A stretch of DNA of 64,000 bases from Bugula neritina (GCA_964035545.1 OZ037773.1:2695751-2759750); one strand, 5' to 3'. Shown: positions 29,581 to 45,769, numbered from the stretch's first letter. The notes: generated by a model not told the origin, from the letters alone. A program made the numbers and translations.

Positions 29581-30876
29581 ATACCAATACTAATACTAAG
29601 TCTAATAGTAATACTATTACTTATAGTAATACTAATACTAATACTAATACTAATACCAACAGTAATATTACTACTACTAGTACTATTATTATTTCTCTTA
29701 CTATTACTATTAGTCTTAGTATAACTAATAGTAACTAGTAATTAGTATTACTATTATTATTACACTTGCAGTACTAGTACTGAATTAAATATCAATCATG
29801 AATTTCATATTTTTAAAGAAAAATTCATAGTGGGTGTTACAGTAAAACTAAATGCAATTATTATAATCATAATAATAAGACACTGACAGTGATACTTATA
29901 GCCATAGTCATAGTGACAGTCAGTGTCACTGTGACTGTCAGTGCTAGATATAAATAAATAATTAAACGGTAAACCTGAAGTTCAACTATATCACTATTAA
30001 TATGAACATCAAATGATCAATAGCAACATCGTAAACTTATTTCTAATTTAAAAGCAAATTAATAAGTTCAACTCCATGTTATAAACTTATACTATACTTA
30101 TAGCTATAGTAATAAAGGTAATGTTATAACTATAAATTATAAAGTTAAACTTAAACTTAAAATATAAAATTAAACTACCTTTGGCGTTACCTTTGTCCTT
30201 GTTAGGTGCTTGTGCGTTTTGAACCAGCTTCACACTCACTGCACCAACTTTACTAAAACTATTCTCTGGTAATCATTATTATCATCATATTTACTTTTAG
30301 TTTTACCATGTAATGATGTATATTAAAGTGGGCGTCACAAATTACTACCAGCCAGTACCACTACTACCAATACTATAGCAACGGCCTCGGAATTACTGAA
30401 CTTGTCATTAAAGGGTTAAAGGTTGAATATATCACGCCAATGACAACAAGAATAGCTAAAAACAGCGCAAGGTTAGGGGCCAGTGGGTGTAACGTTTGTA
30501 TAAGCATCGATGTCCGAACCAATGAACTGAAACTTCCTAGTTATAGGTTATAGTTCAATGGTCCGAGTTATAAACCTAGTGGTCACCACACCAGTTGTGA
30601 GTGGCTCTGTCTATAAGCAATTCCAAGTTGAGAGTGAGTGCAGTAGTTTGGGATTATTTAGTTTGGCGCCAACTCCGAGCTCAAGAATTGTATATGTGTG
30701 TGTGTGTGTGTGTGTGCGCGCGCGTGCGTGCGTGAGTGTGTGTGTGCGTGTGTGTGCGCGTGCGTGCGTGAGTGTGTGTGTGTGTGTATATATATATCTT
30801 TACGAGCTAGTAATTTGATTATAAATAGGTATACGAGAAACATTGTTATTTATTACTTTATTAGGTAAAGTAATTA

Positions 30877-30916
30877 CACTGATATTTCGGGTACCACTGT
30901 ACCCATCTTCAGAGTA
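30877..30916 (-). ncRNA. Minimal type I hammerhead ribozyme in the PLE-A pLTR
   Basis: Reverse complement of 32287-32326. Confidence 0.75.
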
Positions 30917-31163
30917 GCAATGAATGAAATTCAAAAATTATTATGTTACGTTAGACGTTATGCATGACACAAAGAATAGAGAGTGGCAGTTACTGTAAAT
31001 TATTGAAACTTAGGGAGATAATCTTATTTTATATATTACGCAGGTCAAAAATTATACTGATTTTTTTGCATAAAAAATAAATTAGAGTTGACAAAAAAAT
31101 AGATATCCAAATATAAAAACAGCAAGAATTAGTGAAACTATGTGAGAGTTGAGTAGTGTGGAG

Positions 31164-31654
31164 CTATTGATATAGTTTTAGTGGTATGGAGTAATTTTGT
31201 TTATTGAGTTGCGGTTTTATTTGTTTAATGTAGAGAGCTTCGGCTACTTTTCGATGGTGGATTCCTTTAAATGAATGATTTAAAACTGTTACATTGTCTA
31301 TTGATATGTTTCCATGATTAGTGGTAGAGATGTGTTGATAAATTTTGGAATTGATGTCATTGCAGTGTTCATGTATCCTGTGTGATAGGCGACGTCCGGT
31401 TTCGCCTACATATGTTTGTTGACAGGTAGCTTCAGGGCAGGTTATTTTGTAGACTAGGTTGTGAATGTGTTCTTTATTGGTTTTATCTTTGAGATTAAAA
31501 TGTGAACTTAAGGGGGTTCCTTTAAATAAAATACGGGCATTGAGTTCATTTGAAAAAGAGTCTGTAATTAATTTATTGAGGGAGCGGATTAGTTTTTCTC
31601 CTGTTACTCCTTTATAAGGCAGCTGAAGTAAAATGTGTTTCCTGTTGTCTTTTT
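31164..31654 (-). pseudogene. PLE-A C-terminal fragment (RT thumb end plus GIY-YIG endonuclease)
   Basis: ORF 31164..31736; residues upstream of 31655 are read-through into the inverted arm. Confidence 0.85.
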
Positions 31655-31655
31655 C

Positions 31656-32037
31656 ACTCAATGCCCGTATTTTATTTAAAGGAACCCCCTTAAGTTCACA
31701 TTTTAATCTCAAAGATAAAACCAATAAAGAACACATTCACAACCTAGTCTACAAAATAACCTGCCCTGAAGCTAACTGTCAACAAACATATGTAGGCGAA
31801 ACCGGACGTCGCCTATCACACAGGATACATGAACACTGCAATGACATCAATTCCAAAATTTATCAACACATCTCTACCACTAATCATGGAAACATATCAA
31901 TAGACAATGTAACAGTTTTAAATCATTCATTTAAAGGGATCCACCATCGAAAAGTAGCCGAAGCTCTCTACATTAAACAAATAAAACCGCAACTCAATAA
32001 ACAAAATTACTCCATACCACTAAAACTATATCAATAG
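31656..32037 (+). pseudogene. PLE-A GIY-YIG endonuclease fragment (inverted duplicate)
   Basis: ORF 31633..32037; one amino-acid difference (T/N) from the minus arm. Confidence 0.85.
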
Positions 32038-42499: not shown

Positions 42500-42550
42500 T
42501 ATATATATATATATATATATATATATATATATATATATATATATATATAT

Positions 42551-42830
42551 ATTGAGGTATTATGCTCTCACTTAATGCTCAGCAATGACATTCAGTGATT
42601 GAGCTCTCTCACCATAGCCACAAACTCAAGCTGCTAGCATTTTGCAAGGCTCGTGACTCCTAGGTGACCCCTAGAGTCGCTTGAGCTCTCTTGGCTTGAG
42701 TTTACACACCTTTTAAATATGCTTTAGTAGAAACATAAGTTTCTACTATTGCCAAGGTGTGGGCCATGGTACTCTGTTCTGTGCTGATGAGGGGACAAAC
42801 CCCAAAACATGCTGTCCACAGATTGAGGTA
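42551..42830 (+). mobile_element. Retrozyme monomer, subfamily 2 (G12A, but GUC triplet retained)
   Basis: ..ccccaaaacatgctgtccacagattgaggta followed by ~60 TA units. Confidence 0.85.
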
Positions 42831-42952
42831 TATATATATATATATATATATATATATATATATATATATATATATATATATATATATATATATATATATA
42901 TATATATATATATATATATATATATATATATATATATATATATATATATATA

Positions 42953-43685
42953 TCTCAATCTGTGGACAGCAGCTGTTTCGGGATTTGTCCCCTCATCAGC
43001 ACAGAAAGAGTACCATGGCCCACACCTTCGCAATAGTAAAACTTATAGTTTTACTAAAGCATATTTAAAAGGTGTGTAAACTCAAGCCAGAGTGCTCAAG
43101 TGACTCTAGGGGTCACCTAGGAGTCACGAGCATTGCAAAATGCTAGCAGCTTGAGTTTGTGACCATGGTGAGAGTGCTCAATCATTTAATGTCATTGCTG
43201 AGCAATAAATGAGAGCGTAATATCTCAATCTGTGGACAGCAGCTGTTTCGGGATTTGTCCCCTCATCAGCACAGAAAGAGTACCATGGCCCACACCTTCG
43301 CAATAGTAAAACTTATAGTTTTACTAAAGCATATTTAAAAGGTGTGTAAACTCAAGCCAGAGTGCTCAAGTGACTCTAGGGGTCACCTAGGAGTCACGAG
43401 CATTGCAAAATGCTAGCAGCTTGAGTTTGTGACCATGGTGAGAGTGCTCAATCATTTAATGTCATTGCTGAGCAATAAATGAGAGCGTAATATCTCAATC
43501 TGTGGACAGCAGCTGTTTCGGGATTTGTCCCCTCATCAGCACAGAACAGAGTACCATGGCCCACACCTTCGCAATAGTAAAACTTATAGTTTTACTAAAG
43601 CATATTTAAAAGGTGTGTAAACTCAAGCCAGAGTGCTCAAGTGACTCTAGGGGTCACCTAGGAGTCACGAGCATTGCAAAATGCT
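42953..43685 (-). mobile_element. Retrozyme tandem array (2.7 x 270 bp), subfamily 1, with three intact hammerheads (42959-43005, 43229-43275, 43499-43545)
   Basis: Exact 270-bp period (tctcaatc at 42953, 43223, 43493); no credible ORF; (TA)n on both sides. Confidence 0.9.
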
Positions 43686-45769
43686 ATATATATATATATA
43701 TATATATATATATATATATATATATATATATATATATATATATATATATATATATATATATATATATATATATATATATATATATATATATATATATAAC
43801 ATATAACATATGACAGATAACAGATGACAGATGACATATAGTATATGTGTAGTACTATGTATATGTACTATTCATATGACCAATAAGGATTTCATCACAC
43901 CAGCTCCTGCCATTTTCACAATTGACTATAGTAGGCAAGAGCAAGAGTACAAAAAGATTATATAAAACGTTGTGATTCCAGATGACATGGTTTAGACTGT
44001 TTCCTCATTGCAATGTTAGCAAAAGCCCAATTAACTTTTTCCTCTAATATTCAAGCTTTGCATATGATATATTACAAACATGGTTTCGTAGCAATGCAAT
44101 AGGGAGTTATGCTCTTTTTTACACCTAGGACAACTGCCAACTAATGCAGCAGCTTTGAAATTGCAATGATGTTGCAATGTTCGGAGTTATGTTTCCTCCA
44201 TCAACTGCAATTGAACACACCTCCCAGTAAATTGGGTATATACTGTGAGTACTAAGTATGCCTGTGTGTCTATACACAGCTTTCACTGTAATTACTAAAA
44301 GCATGAACTTAGCTGATTAATAAAACTAATGAGATATTGAACTTGGCTGGCACATGCAAGCAGCTCCTACAATAACAGCATTTATTGCTATTGTATATAT
44401 ACATAACTCCCAAGGCTCTGCTGCTATTATTAATCAGCTAAGGCCATTGCTGGTAGCTCAGGATACAAAGCTTGTTCATTAATTAGTAACTAGCAAGATA
44501 TTCAGCGTACTACCAGCATTTCAGCAAAGGTAAGTGAATAATATACTACATTACTAAAGTGAGGTGTGCAGCATACACATAATAATATAGTTGTAATGGG
44601 CACTGGTATTTTTATGTGTTTGACAAAAAAATTATATTTGACATATCAATTTTAAAAGGCTGGTGTAATAGGTATTGTAGTTTAGGAAACTATATTATAT
44701 ACATTTGATTAGCTGCTGAAATACTCAAACAATTTAAGTATATAAAGGTTCATCAGGATTGCATAATATATTTTAGAGCTAAAATCTAAAGCCAAAATCT
44801 ATGTGATTTTAATTTAACCTTAGAGCTATAAGCTTGCTTGAGCGAGGGTGTATTTGAATTGTTACTAAGACATTCTAGTATAAGTATAAAGATTATTTTG
44901 CGTGCAAATATAGTCAAAATATTCTATAGATTTACCCTTCACTTCAATTCACCATTGATGAGCTTGGTGTTAGTGTAATCCTCATATTCACAAGTCAAAT
45001 ATAAAAATAGTAGTAAAATTTCTCCAAAAATATGGATTCTAATGATTTGAGCAGCTATACCATTTCTTAATGAGACTGTACACGCAGAGTCTATACAGTT
45101 ATTGTGACTGCTGATAGCTGATATTTACTAACCCTAATATGATATTCTAAAGAAGTGTATGTTAATGACTCATATCTACAACTGCAGATGATAATTAAGG
45201 AATGTAATTATTCTTTGTGCATGCTGTAAGTAATAATTAACACTTGGTGAATATACAAAGACATATTAGCACTCTATAAGCACATTAATTAATCTACAAA
45301 TATTTTATATGACTCAATCAAAATGAAGCAGTAGCATTAATATCCTTTACTGAGTCAGAACTTGGACTAACAAAGAAATGATAAGATAATTCCTCGATCA
45401 ACAAACATCCTTAGGGAATCTAATCAATATTGTAGACTATGATACCATTAGGATAATACAGTGTGTATCTTTTACTATACAATATTCTAAACTATATATT
45501 ATCACTGTGCACGCTACAGAACACCCTACACTTGGTAACTAATAATATTTACTGATAGGTTATCAATGTTTTAATGAACTTGTGATGATATCTAACTGGC
45601 ATGTGTGTAACTGTTTGCCTGTTGATACAACAATCAAGCCTAAAGAATTATGGATTTTACAAGCTTGAATCATGTAATTCCACAAAGCTTGTAGTTGCAG
45701 AAATTATTTACATTTGTGTGTCTTAGACTTATTGAGCTGATGTGTTGGGTATTTTCAACTAAGCATATG

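Follow-up and report, generated by a model that had tools for sequence, protein, structure and literature searches.

A retrozyme and Penelope-like elements of Bugula neritina share (TA)n microsatellite targets and 3′ ends in AU patches downstream of a hammerhead

Metazoan retrozymes without long terminal repeats (non-LTR retrozymes; Cervera and de la Pena 2020, PMC7229834; PMC7761336) have already been proposed to be mobilised in trans by Penelope-like elements (PLEs) (PMC7229834, PMC7761336, bioRxiv 10.64898/2026.07.22.740005), and a review states that their repeats show no motif pointing to an autonomous partner (PMC7761336). In Xenopus, a non-autonomous retrozyme proposed to use PLE machinery co-occurs with PLEs in the genome and is linked to them by sequence homology to pseudo-long terminal repeats (pseudo-LTRs) (Li, Clavereau and Pollet 2026, bioRxiv 10.64898/2026.07.22.740005). 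The machinery of a lizard PLE has been studied in vitro, where AT-rich DNA is cleaved, extension proceeds from both strands, and copying begins at two adjacent internal start sites downstream of the hammerhead, explaining the PLE tail (Frangieh et al. 2024, PMC11167929). Among other PLEs, Naiads have a strong (TA)n insertion bias, and a role in guiding (TA)n recognition has been suggested for the Cys-rich linker of Neptune (Craig et al. 2021, PMC8557442). Here we analyse a 64-kb stretch of the Bugula neritina genome (the window, G000:C9:2695751-2759750; 216-Mb assembly, 321 contigs, ~33% GC) in which a hammerhead retrozyme and two PLE families, PLE-A and PLE-B, occupy one microsatellite tract. 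Throughout the genome these elements share a (TA)n target and a fixed 3′ end in an AU patch downstream of a hammerhead.

The Bugula retrozyme resembles the published metazoan retrozymes in its 270-nt non-coding repeat with a canonical type I hammerhead, its occurrence as monomers to short tandem arrays, its low GC and many near-identical copies, its coexistence with hammerhead PLEs, and the presence of the unit in RNA libraries, with one contig across a unit junction. It departs from them in having a fixed 3′ end a short distance past the cleavage site, a (TA)n target and insertions mostly of one unit or less. PLE-A and PLE-B resemble canonical endonuclease-bearing (EN+) PLEs (PMC11167929) in having just one open reading frame (ORF) for a reverse transcriptase (RT) with a C-terminal GIY-YIG endonuclease, a minimal hammerhead in the pseudo-LTR, pseudo-LTRs built from tandem or inverted partial copies, and frequent 5′ truncation. 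Like the lizard PLE they have at least two alternative 3′ ends (here 26-72 nt apart), internal to a tandem transcript, and an AT-rich target. However, their start sites are AU patches able to pair with the target, whereas the lizard site is an AC-rich stem-loop without target homology, and the target here is a strict dinucleotide repeat. As in Naiads (PMC8557442), the (TA)n bias is so strong that target-site duplications are unreadable; Naiads, in contrast, have an N-terminal endonuclease and no hammerhead. The arrangement also recalls pairs of long and short interspersed nuclear elements (LINEs and SINEs), with a short non-coding element of fixed 3′ end and truncated 5′ end beside autonomous elements of the same target preference, but there is no shared 3′ tail sequence and no poly(A), and the template is probably circular or multimeric.

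We found that retrozyme copies have one 3′ end and many 5′ ends. The unit is 270-272 nt long, is non-coding (the longest open frame in a dimer has 44 codons), forms arrays of 1-4 units and falls into two subfamilies. Ends were counted genome-wide by exact-word occurrence of the 3′ end word. The word of subfamily 1, GTCCACAGATTGAGATAT, occurs 301 times, followed by ATATATAT in 213 cases and by the next unit in 46; at least 84% of subfamily 1 termini (213/255) run in phase into at least four TA repeats. In subfamily 2, 99 of the 151 occurrences of the end word enter TA, and most of the others are internal junctions one unit upstream of a TA-flanked end. Partial-unit matches extend to the unit 3′ end in 31 of 34 cases, one of the three exceptions being an internal deletion. 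Retrozyme 5′ ends scatter over the unit. Flanks, hammerhead cores and PLE ends were counted in a sample of 90 loci drawn from the genome. Here the retrozyme arrays had TA at the 3′ side in 34/35 cases and at the 5′ side in 33/35, with median tracts of 69 and 70 nt; background TA (runs of at least 10 nt) makes up 0.5% of the window outside the elements. End positions, TA flanks and the truncation pattern are direct observations. A Helitron-like origin was ruled out on inspection by the fixed 3′ end together with the 5′ truncation.

PLE ends in the sampled loci follow the same pattern, with 34/35 PLE-B and 41/45 PLE-A 3′ ends in TA. PLE-B ends are split about evenly between ...CACTACAT/TATAT and a form 72 nt longer, ...GCATACAT/TATAT, and PLE-A copies stop either at ...CCTATTTATA(AT) or at one of three close positions 26-36 nt beyond it (...GATATAT, ...ATTTA, ...TTTAAAT). 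In both families these tail-less and tailed ends are the known PLE tail. The four PLE-A exceptions comprise two tandem continuations, one degenerate TA tract and one true non-TA site; L072 and L089, considered as non-TA targets, were ruled out as tandem continuations into the 5′ untranslated region (UTR). When L088 is joined to L072, a full-length PLE-A stands in tandem with an upstream partial copy, and the sequence past ...GATATATTTAAAT passes straight into the 5′ UTR, with the ATG ~35 nt on. The 3′ ends found in the genome are therefore start sites that lie within a read-through transcript, downstream of the hammerhead. An earlier note, made from the sequence of the window alone, had claimed that every sense 3′ end abuts TA, that PLE-B has both a short and an extended pseudo-LTR end, and that the ends lie in AU-rich patches shortly downstream of a hammerhead. 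The first claim is borne out at the locus, including a remote solo retrozyme, and by the genome-wide flank check for the three families; both PLE-B ends were seen and correspond to the tail; and the internal start sites of tandem PLE-A agree with the third.

The TA tracts are most probably targets and not element tails, because the 5′ ends vary and also abut TA and the median tract lengths are equal on both sides. The earlier note had raised the contrary case of element-derived TA, which might arise by reiterative copying of the terminal AUAU by a telomerase-related RT, or by microsatellite growth from ATAT after insertion. PLE RTs are indeed the closest relatives of telomerase (PMC8557442), and every 3′ TA run keeps the phase of the element ATAT. 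However, the 5′ flanks equal the 3′ flanks in both frequency and length of TA, and TA adjoins arbitrary 5′-truncation points (for example unit positions 28, 58, 75, 112, 130, 173 and 214), which cannot seed a repeat. Some 3′ TA runs, moreover, are just 6-9 nt long, beside (CA)n or (TG)n (L045, L037), and element-free tracts of 70-104 nt occur in the same window. A last argument comes from L074 (G000:C5:12006242-12009602, positions 1495-2631), a PLE-A inverted dimer at a non-TA site with no added TA. Element-made TA is therefore very unlikely. L074 also has a 6-bp GTACAC target-site duplication, a rare readable case for a PLE in this genome, and its tail-less start site matches the target over 5 nt (ATAAT).

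Nor is the pattern likely to be local. Three to four units at the locus are 99% identical duplicates, and TA runs break short-read contigs, as seen in the contigs of public runs, so one might suspect that duplication had multiplied one chance cluster, or that the assembly is faulty in a stretch so rich in repeats. Yet hundreds of independent loci on all large contigs share these junctions, which refutes this explanation for the junction rule and leaves it scarcely credible overall.

Inverted dimers give a further view of how PLE copies begin. Both 3′ ends faced outward in all seven independent cases (7/7), and each of these dimers paired one tailed and one tail-less arm (7/7; L037, L040/L047/L087, L042, L045, L090, L074 and window positions 32410-34605), which hints that the two strands use different start sites. 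The PLE-A dimer of the window is the sole case with both arms reaching into the tail. Outward 3′ ends fit priming from both strands. The tail-less end lies exactly 61 nt past the predicted cleavage site in both PLE-A (32322-32383) and PLE-B (34467-34528), and the two pseudo-LTRs are unalignable; the equal distance may reflect a ruler or chance. At least four further hammerhead-bearing families were met by chance in flanks. Three of them end in (TA)n 41-48 nt past the predicted cleavage: family C (L013, L017, L063, L068), family D (L036, L053) and family E (L052, L058). The fourth, family F (L085), has no TA within 110 nt.

PLE-A has an open frame of 777 codons with RVT_1 and, at its C-terminal end, GIY-YIG (PF01541), whereas in PLE-B a YRDD RT motif followed by GIY...YVG was read by eye, Pfam giving no significant match to PLE-B fragments. 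Open frames elsewhere in the genome, with RVT_1 and GIY-YIG domains, are 696-734 aa long for PLE-A and 700-708 aa for PLE-B; these frames, like the internal PLE-A ends, are directly established. Copies are 96-99% identical within the retrozyme, PLE-A and PLE-B alike. Before the GIY-YIG, PLE-B carries a C-x-C-x5-C-x5-C-x3-C linker and PLE-A has no Cys-rich linker. Since PLE-A nevertheless ends in TA, the linker is not the sole determinant of (TA)n targeting.

We searched the window with a descriptor for type I hammerheads (a helix I no shorter than 4 bp, CUGANGA, the hairpin of helix II, GAAA, U16.1, H17). Matches were confined to the retrozyme, PLE-A and PLE-B, with 0 in 100 shuffles. Rfam covariance models found no hammerhead, whether at the gathering score or with the cut-off relaxed to E<=10 for 28 kb and for 3 kb, and Rfam matches to a pestivirus 3′ UTR, mir-297 and mir-1277 were set aside as artefacts of TA repeats. 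Helix III is very short (1-4 bp) and in the PLEs palindromic; minimal PLE hammerheads with palindromic short helices are a published type, thought to act as dimers (PMC7761336). In retrozyme subfamily 1 we read helix I (6 bp), CUGAUGA, helix II (GGGG/(U)CCC), GAAA and helix III (4 bp, CUG loop), a predicted canonical type I fold with predicted cleavage after GUC. Helix II measures 6 bp in both PLE hammerheads. The one in PLE-B combines it with CUGACGA and with the palindrome CUAUAUAG as helix III; the one in PLE-A combines it with CUGAAGA and an additional U, and its helix III shrinks to A-UA-U. Across the 90 loci the core is constant, and the helix II sequence differs among families, C-F included, yet stays paired. 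The four subfamily 2 copies in the window (...GGTAT) share a G12->A change and a 2-nt deletion in helix III, and copies of the subfamily elsewhere are intact, so these four are probably dead through decay. A dead-hammerhead subfamily that still transposes was ruled out, as G12A is private to the duplicated window copies.

The retrozyme 3′ end lies in an AUAU patch 11-15 nt past the predicted cleavage site, and none of the sampled copies runs from cleavage site to cleavage site. The template therefore spans an intact site, and would be a ligated circle or an uncleaved multimer. Multimeric insertions are a minority, with 46 internal junctions against ~255 termini, and most insertions are of one unit or less. 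Genome-wide, 35 arrays against at least 213 (~16%, or ~8 times the uniform expectation) also have their 5′ junction at the AUAU patch, which is compatible with microhomology acting a second time once a circle has been copied through one turn; an apparent half of arrays being exact monomers was a sampling bias. RNA-library contigs contain the unit without flanks, and one crosses a unit junction; circle and multimer cannot be told apart in them and DNA carry-over is possible, so they are suggestive only as a sign of the transcript form. Many partial retrozymes (13/~25 in subfamily 2, 2/9 in subfamily 1) have their 5′ end between unit positions 214 and 232, in the 5′ half of the hammerhead; such clustering could come from an RT that stops where the ribozyme is folded, or from an RNA 5′ end that is preferred. 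For window positions 19708-20043, the retrozyme bins in a DNA run from the same organism had summed contig word depths of 68,000-464,000 versus ~70-120 in the unique flanks, a depth that is a sum over contigs and not a copy number; the assembly may hold fewer retrozyme copies than the genome.

We propose the following mechanism. A PLE protein, with RT and GIY-YIG endonuclease, would nick TA tracts, and the freed TA 3′ end would pair with the RNA at an internal start site, where a short AU patch lies at a set distance downstream of the hammerhead. Reverse transcription would then proceed toward the 5′ end, usually stopping early, to give a fixed 3′ end and variable 5′ ends, with inverted dimers when both strands prime and with tailed and tail-less ends from alternative start sites. 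Retrozyme RNA would be copied in trans by the same kind of machinery, from its own AUAU patch, and the template would be circular or an uncleaved multimer since the start lies across the cleavage site. TA targeting and AU-patch start sites are well supported; we infer the endonuclease specificity, the microhomology pairing and the use of a PLE protein by the retrozyme. Taken as a whole, insertion into TA microsatellites with PLE-type priming, including the retrozyme in trans, appears moderately probable.

For the retrozyme itself, trans-mobilisation by a PLE, not specifically by those at the locus, is plausible, and we lean somewhat towards it. The retrozyme shares target, end logic, ribozyme class and similar copy youth with the PLEs, and the open PLE frames elsewhere in the genome also count in favour. 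Its arrays often lie within 1.5 kb of PLE copies of different families in either orientation, a proximity that follows from the shared target preference and implies no structural link. Several observations weigh against a PLE partner or against priming by microhomology. The retrozyme has no similarity to the pseudo-LTR of PLE-A or PLE-B, alignment scores being those of shuffled sequence, and its start lies 11-15 nt from the cleavage site versus 41-61 nt or more in the PLE families. Its inverted dimers are apparently rare, with one candidate pair seen. In the lizard PLE, start site and nicked DNA share no homology (PMC11167929), and the microhomology here may be incidental, because whatever ends within a TA tract will look in phase. 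The earlier note had taken the shared end signature as circumstantial evidence that PLE machinery moves the retrozyme; the shared target and end architecture speak for this, and the missing pseudo-LTR homology and different spacing against it. As the genome contains many more PLE families (41-56% identity), these data do not single out which PLE, if any, is the partner.

Microsatellite-specific LINEs exist in other animals, which counts towards a different possibility, namely that another TA-targeting RT, such as that of a LINE of this kind, moves the retrozyme and that it lies beside PLEs only through the shared TA preference. The absence of homology to the PLE-A and PLE-B pseudo-LTRs and the different hammerhead-to-start spacing would be expected in that case, and LINEs were left open as candidate partners (PMC7229834). 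On the other side, the six sampled hammerhead-bearing families share the TA target and the AU-patch end, for which PLE machinery is the simplest common cause, and the hammerhead itself is common to the retrozyme and the PLEs. No LINE was seen beside the sampled arrays, although no systematic search was made. We consider another RT unlikely.

The locus from which these counts set out was resolved by self-comparison, repeat finding and direct reading of the sequence (Table 1). It is a compound (TG)n(TA)n microsatellite hit by about four separate retrotransposon insertions, and carries a PLE-A inverted dimer, 5′-truncated PLE-B and the 270-nt hammerhead retrozyme in its two subfamilies, with a TA run at every element junction. 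The earlier note had described three hammerhead-bearing families nested in one (TA)n site; they do share the tract, but sit side by side within it, not one inside another. The PLE-A dimer (30789-32406) consists of arms of ~757 nt that are 99.2% identical, with both 3′ ends outward, each arm including the C-terminal GIY-YIG part (Pfam PF01541) and 370 nt of 3′ region; its outer ends both read ...CTCGTAAAG followed by ATAT. The PLE-B unit is 2124 bp long, with 356-nt inverted terminal pseudo-LTR arms and the 72-nt extension on one side, so that one arm has the tail-less end and the other the tailed end described above. Four subfamily 2 monomers of 280 nt, ending ...TTGAGGTAT, alternate with the PLE-B units and TA runs. 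Long TA tracts also occur in the window without insertions, at 25241-25344 (104 nt) and 26341-26410 (70 nt).

Table 1. Features of the window, in window coordinates.
Feature	Position	Strand	Remarks
(TA)20	19716..19755	.	adjoins sense 3′ end of solo retrozyme
Solo retrozyme, subfamily 1, one unit + 13 nt	19753..20034	-	sense 3′ end ...CACAGATTGAGAT at 19753; intact type I hammerhead (predicted)
(TA)42	20037..20119	.	adjoins sense 5′ end of solo retrozyme
(TG)n microsatellite	30695..30787	.	left border of compound (TG)n(TA)n target; 10-nt TA stub next
PLE-A left arm	30789..31545	-	GIY-YIG C-terminal part and 3′ pseudo-LTR with minimal hammerhead; 3′ end faces outward into ATATATAT
PLE-A right arm	31546..32406	+	GIY-YIG ORF 31633-32037; hammerhead core 32291; predicted cleavage after 32322; 3′ end ...GTAAAGATAT into 9-nt TA stub
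PLE-B unit 0	32410..34605	-	core inverted relative to units 1-3; tail-less end 32410; 72-nt tail 34534-34605
(TA)91	34606..34788	.	from repeat finding
Retrozyme subfamily 2 monomer, one unit + ~9 nt	34787..35066	+	hammerhead with G12A and helix III deletion
(TA)40	35064..35142	.	from repeat finding
PLE-B unit 1	35138..37333	+	inverted tail-less arm 35138-35490; RT fragment 35667-36395; frameshift; Cys-rich linker and GIY-YIG 36509-36916; 3′ pseudo-LTR 36906-37261; tail 37262-37333
(TA)23, retrozyme subfamily 2 at 37379-37659, (TA)37	37334..37729	+	
PLE-B unit 2	37725..39919	+	duplicate of unit 1
(TA)22, retrozyme subfamily 2 at 39963-40243, (TA)35	39920..40309	+	
PLE-B unit 3	40305..42499	+	duplicate of unit 1
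(TA)26, retrozyme subfamily 2 at 42551-42831, (TA)62	42500..42953	+	
Retrozyme subfamily 1 array, 2.7 units	42950..43686	-	sense 3′ end ...CACAGATTGAGATAT at 42950, reading ...TTGAGATAT; 5′ end cut off at unit position 75; three intact hammerheads (predicted); orientation opposite to monomers
(TA)57	43685..43798	.	right border of target tract

Much of the repetition at the locus arose after insertion. PLE-B units 1-3 are 99.1-99.4% identical across 5.6 kb, and unit 0 is the same unit with its core flipped and the tail remaining on the right. The 2.59-kb units are thus duplicates of one event, and the block of PLE-B and retrozyme was later amplified at the DNA level to about four units. The number of independent insertions is therefore about four, not ~10: the PLE-A inverted dimer, a 5′-truncated PLE-B with an inverted pseudo-LTR arm, a subfamily 2 monomer and the subfamily 1 2.7-mer. 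Units 1-3 also share a U16.1->C change (TAGCC for TAGTC) in the 3′ pseudo-LTR hammerhead (37143-37218, 39729-39804 and 42309-42384), which indicates that they were copied from one mutated unit. No PLE copy at the locus is autonomous, every one being truncated or frameshifted; PLE-A is represented by its last 134-190 codons only, and PLE-B starts within the RT domain, with a frameshift separating RT from endonuclease. The view of the locus as a captured pair of autonomous element and parasite is therefore not supported, and the co-location is explained by shared target preference and local duplication. Elsewhere in the window, a tRNA-like match at 16847-16917 (29.7 bits versus the 29-bit Rfam gathering score, with several mismatched pairs) may be a tRNA-derived repeat or pseudogene.

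The novelty lies in the target and end signature that retrozymes and PLEs have in common here; the idea of trans-mobilisation itself is not new. Published arguments for a PLE partner rest on co-occurrence and, in frogs, on pseudo-LTR homology. That homology is absent here for the two co-located PLEs, and this genome adds evidence of a different kind: at least five PLE-type families with hammerheads reside in it that have the (TA)n target in common with the retrozymes, and the end architecture is common to them too, the 3′ end being fixed within an AU patch a little way downstream of a hammerhead and the 5′ ends varying. One further idea, which we regard as doubtful though worth stating, is that PLE proteins recognise their template by the hammerhead fold and a nearby AU patch, not by sequence. 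If this were true, any RNA with such a module could be copied into TA tracts, including a sequence-unrelated circular retrozyme; the function long sought for the PLE hammerhead would be that of a ruler by which the RT is loaded and its start site set; and the genome, in which at least six such modules have spacings between 11 and 61 nt, would serve as a natural experiment. Altogether, the finding leaves the existing belief in PLE-driven retrozyme mobility unchanged, makes it testable in a young, high-copy system, and names concrete substrates for in vitro work.

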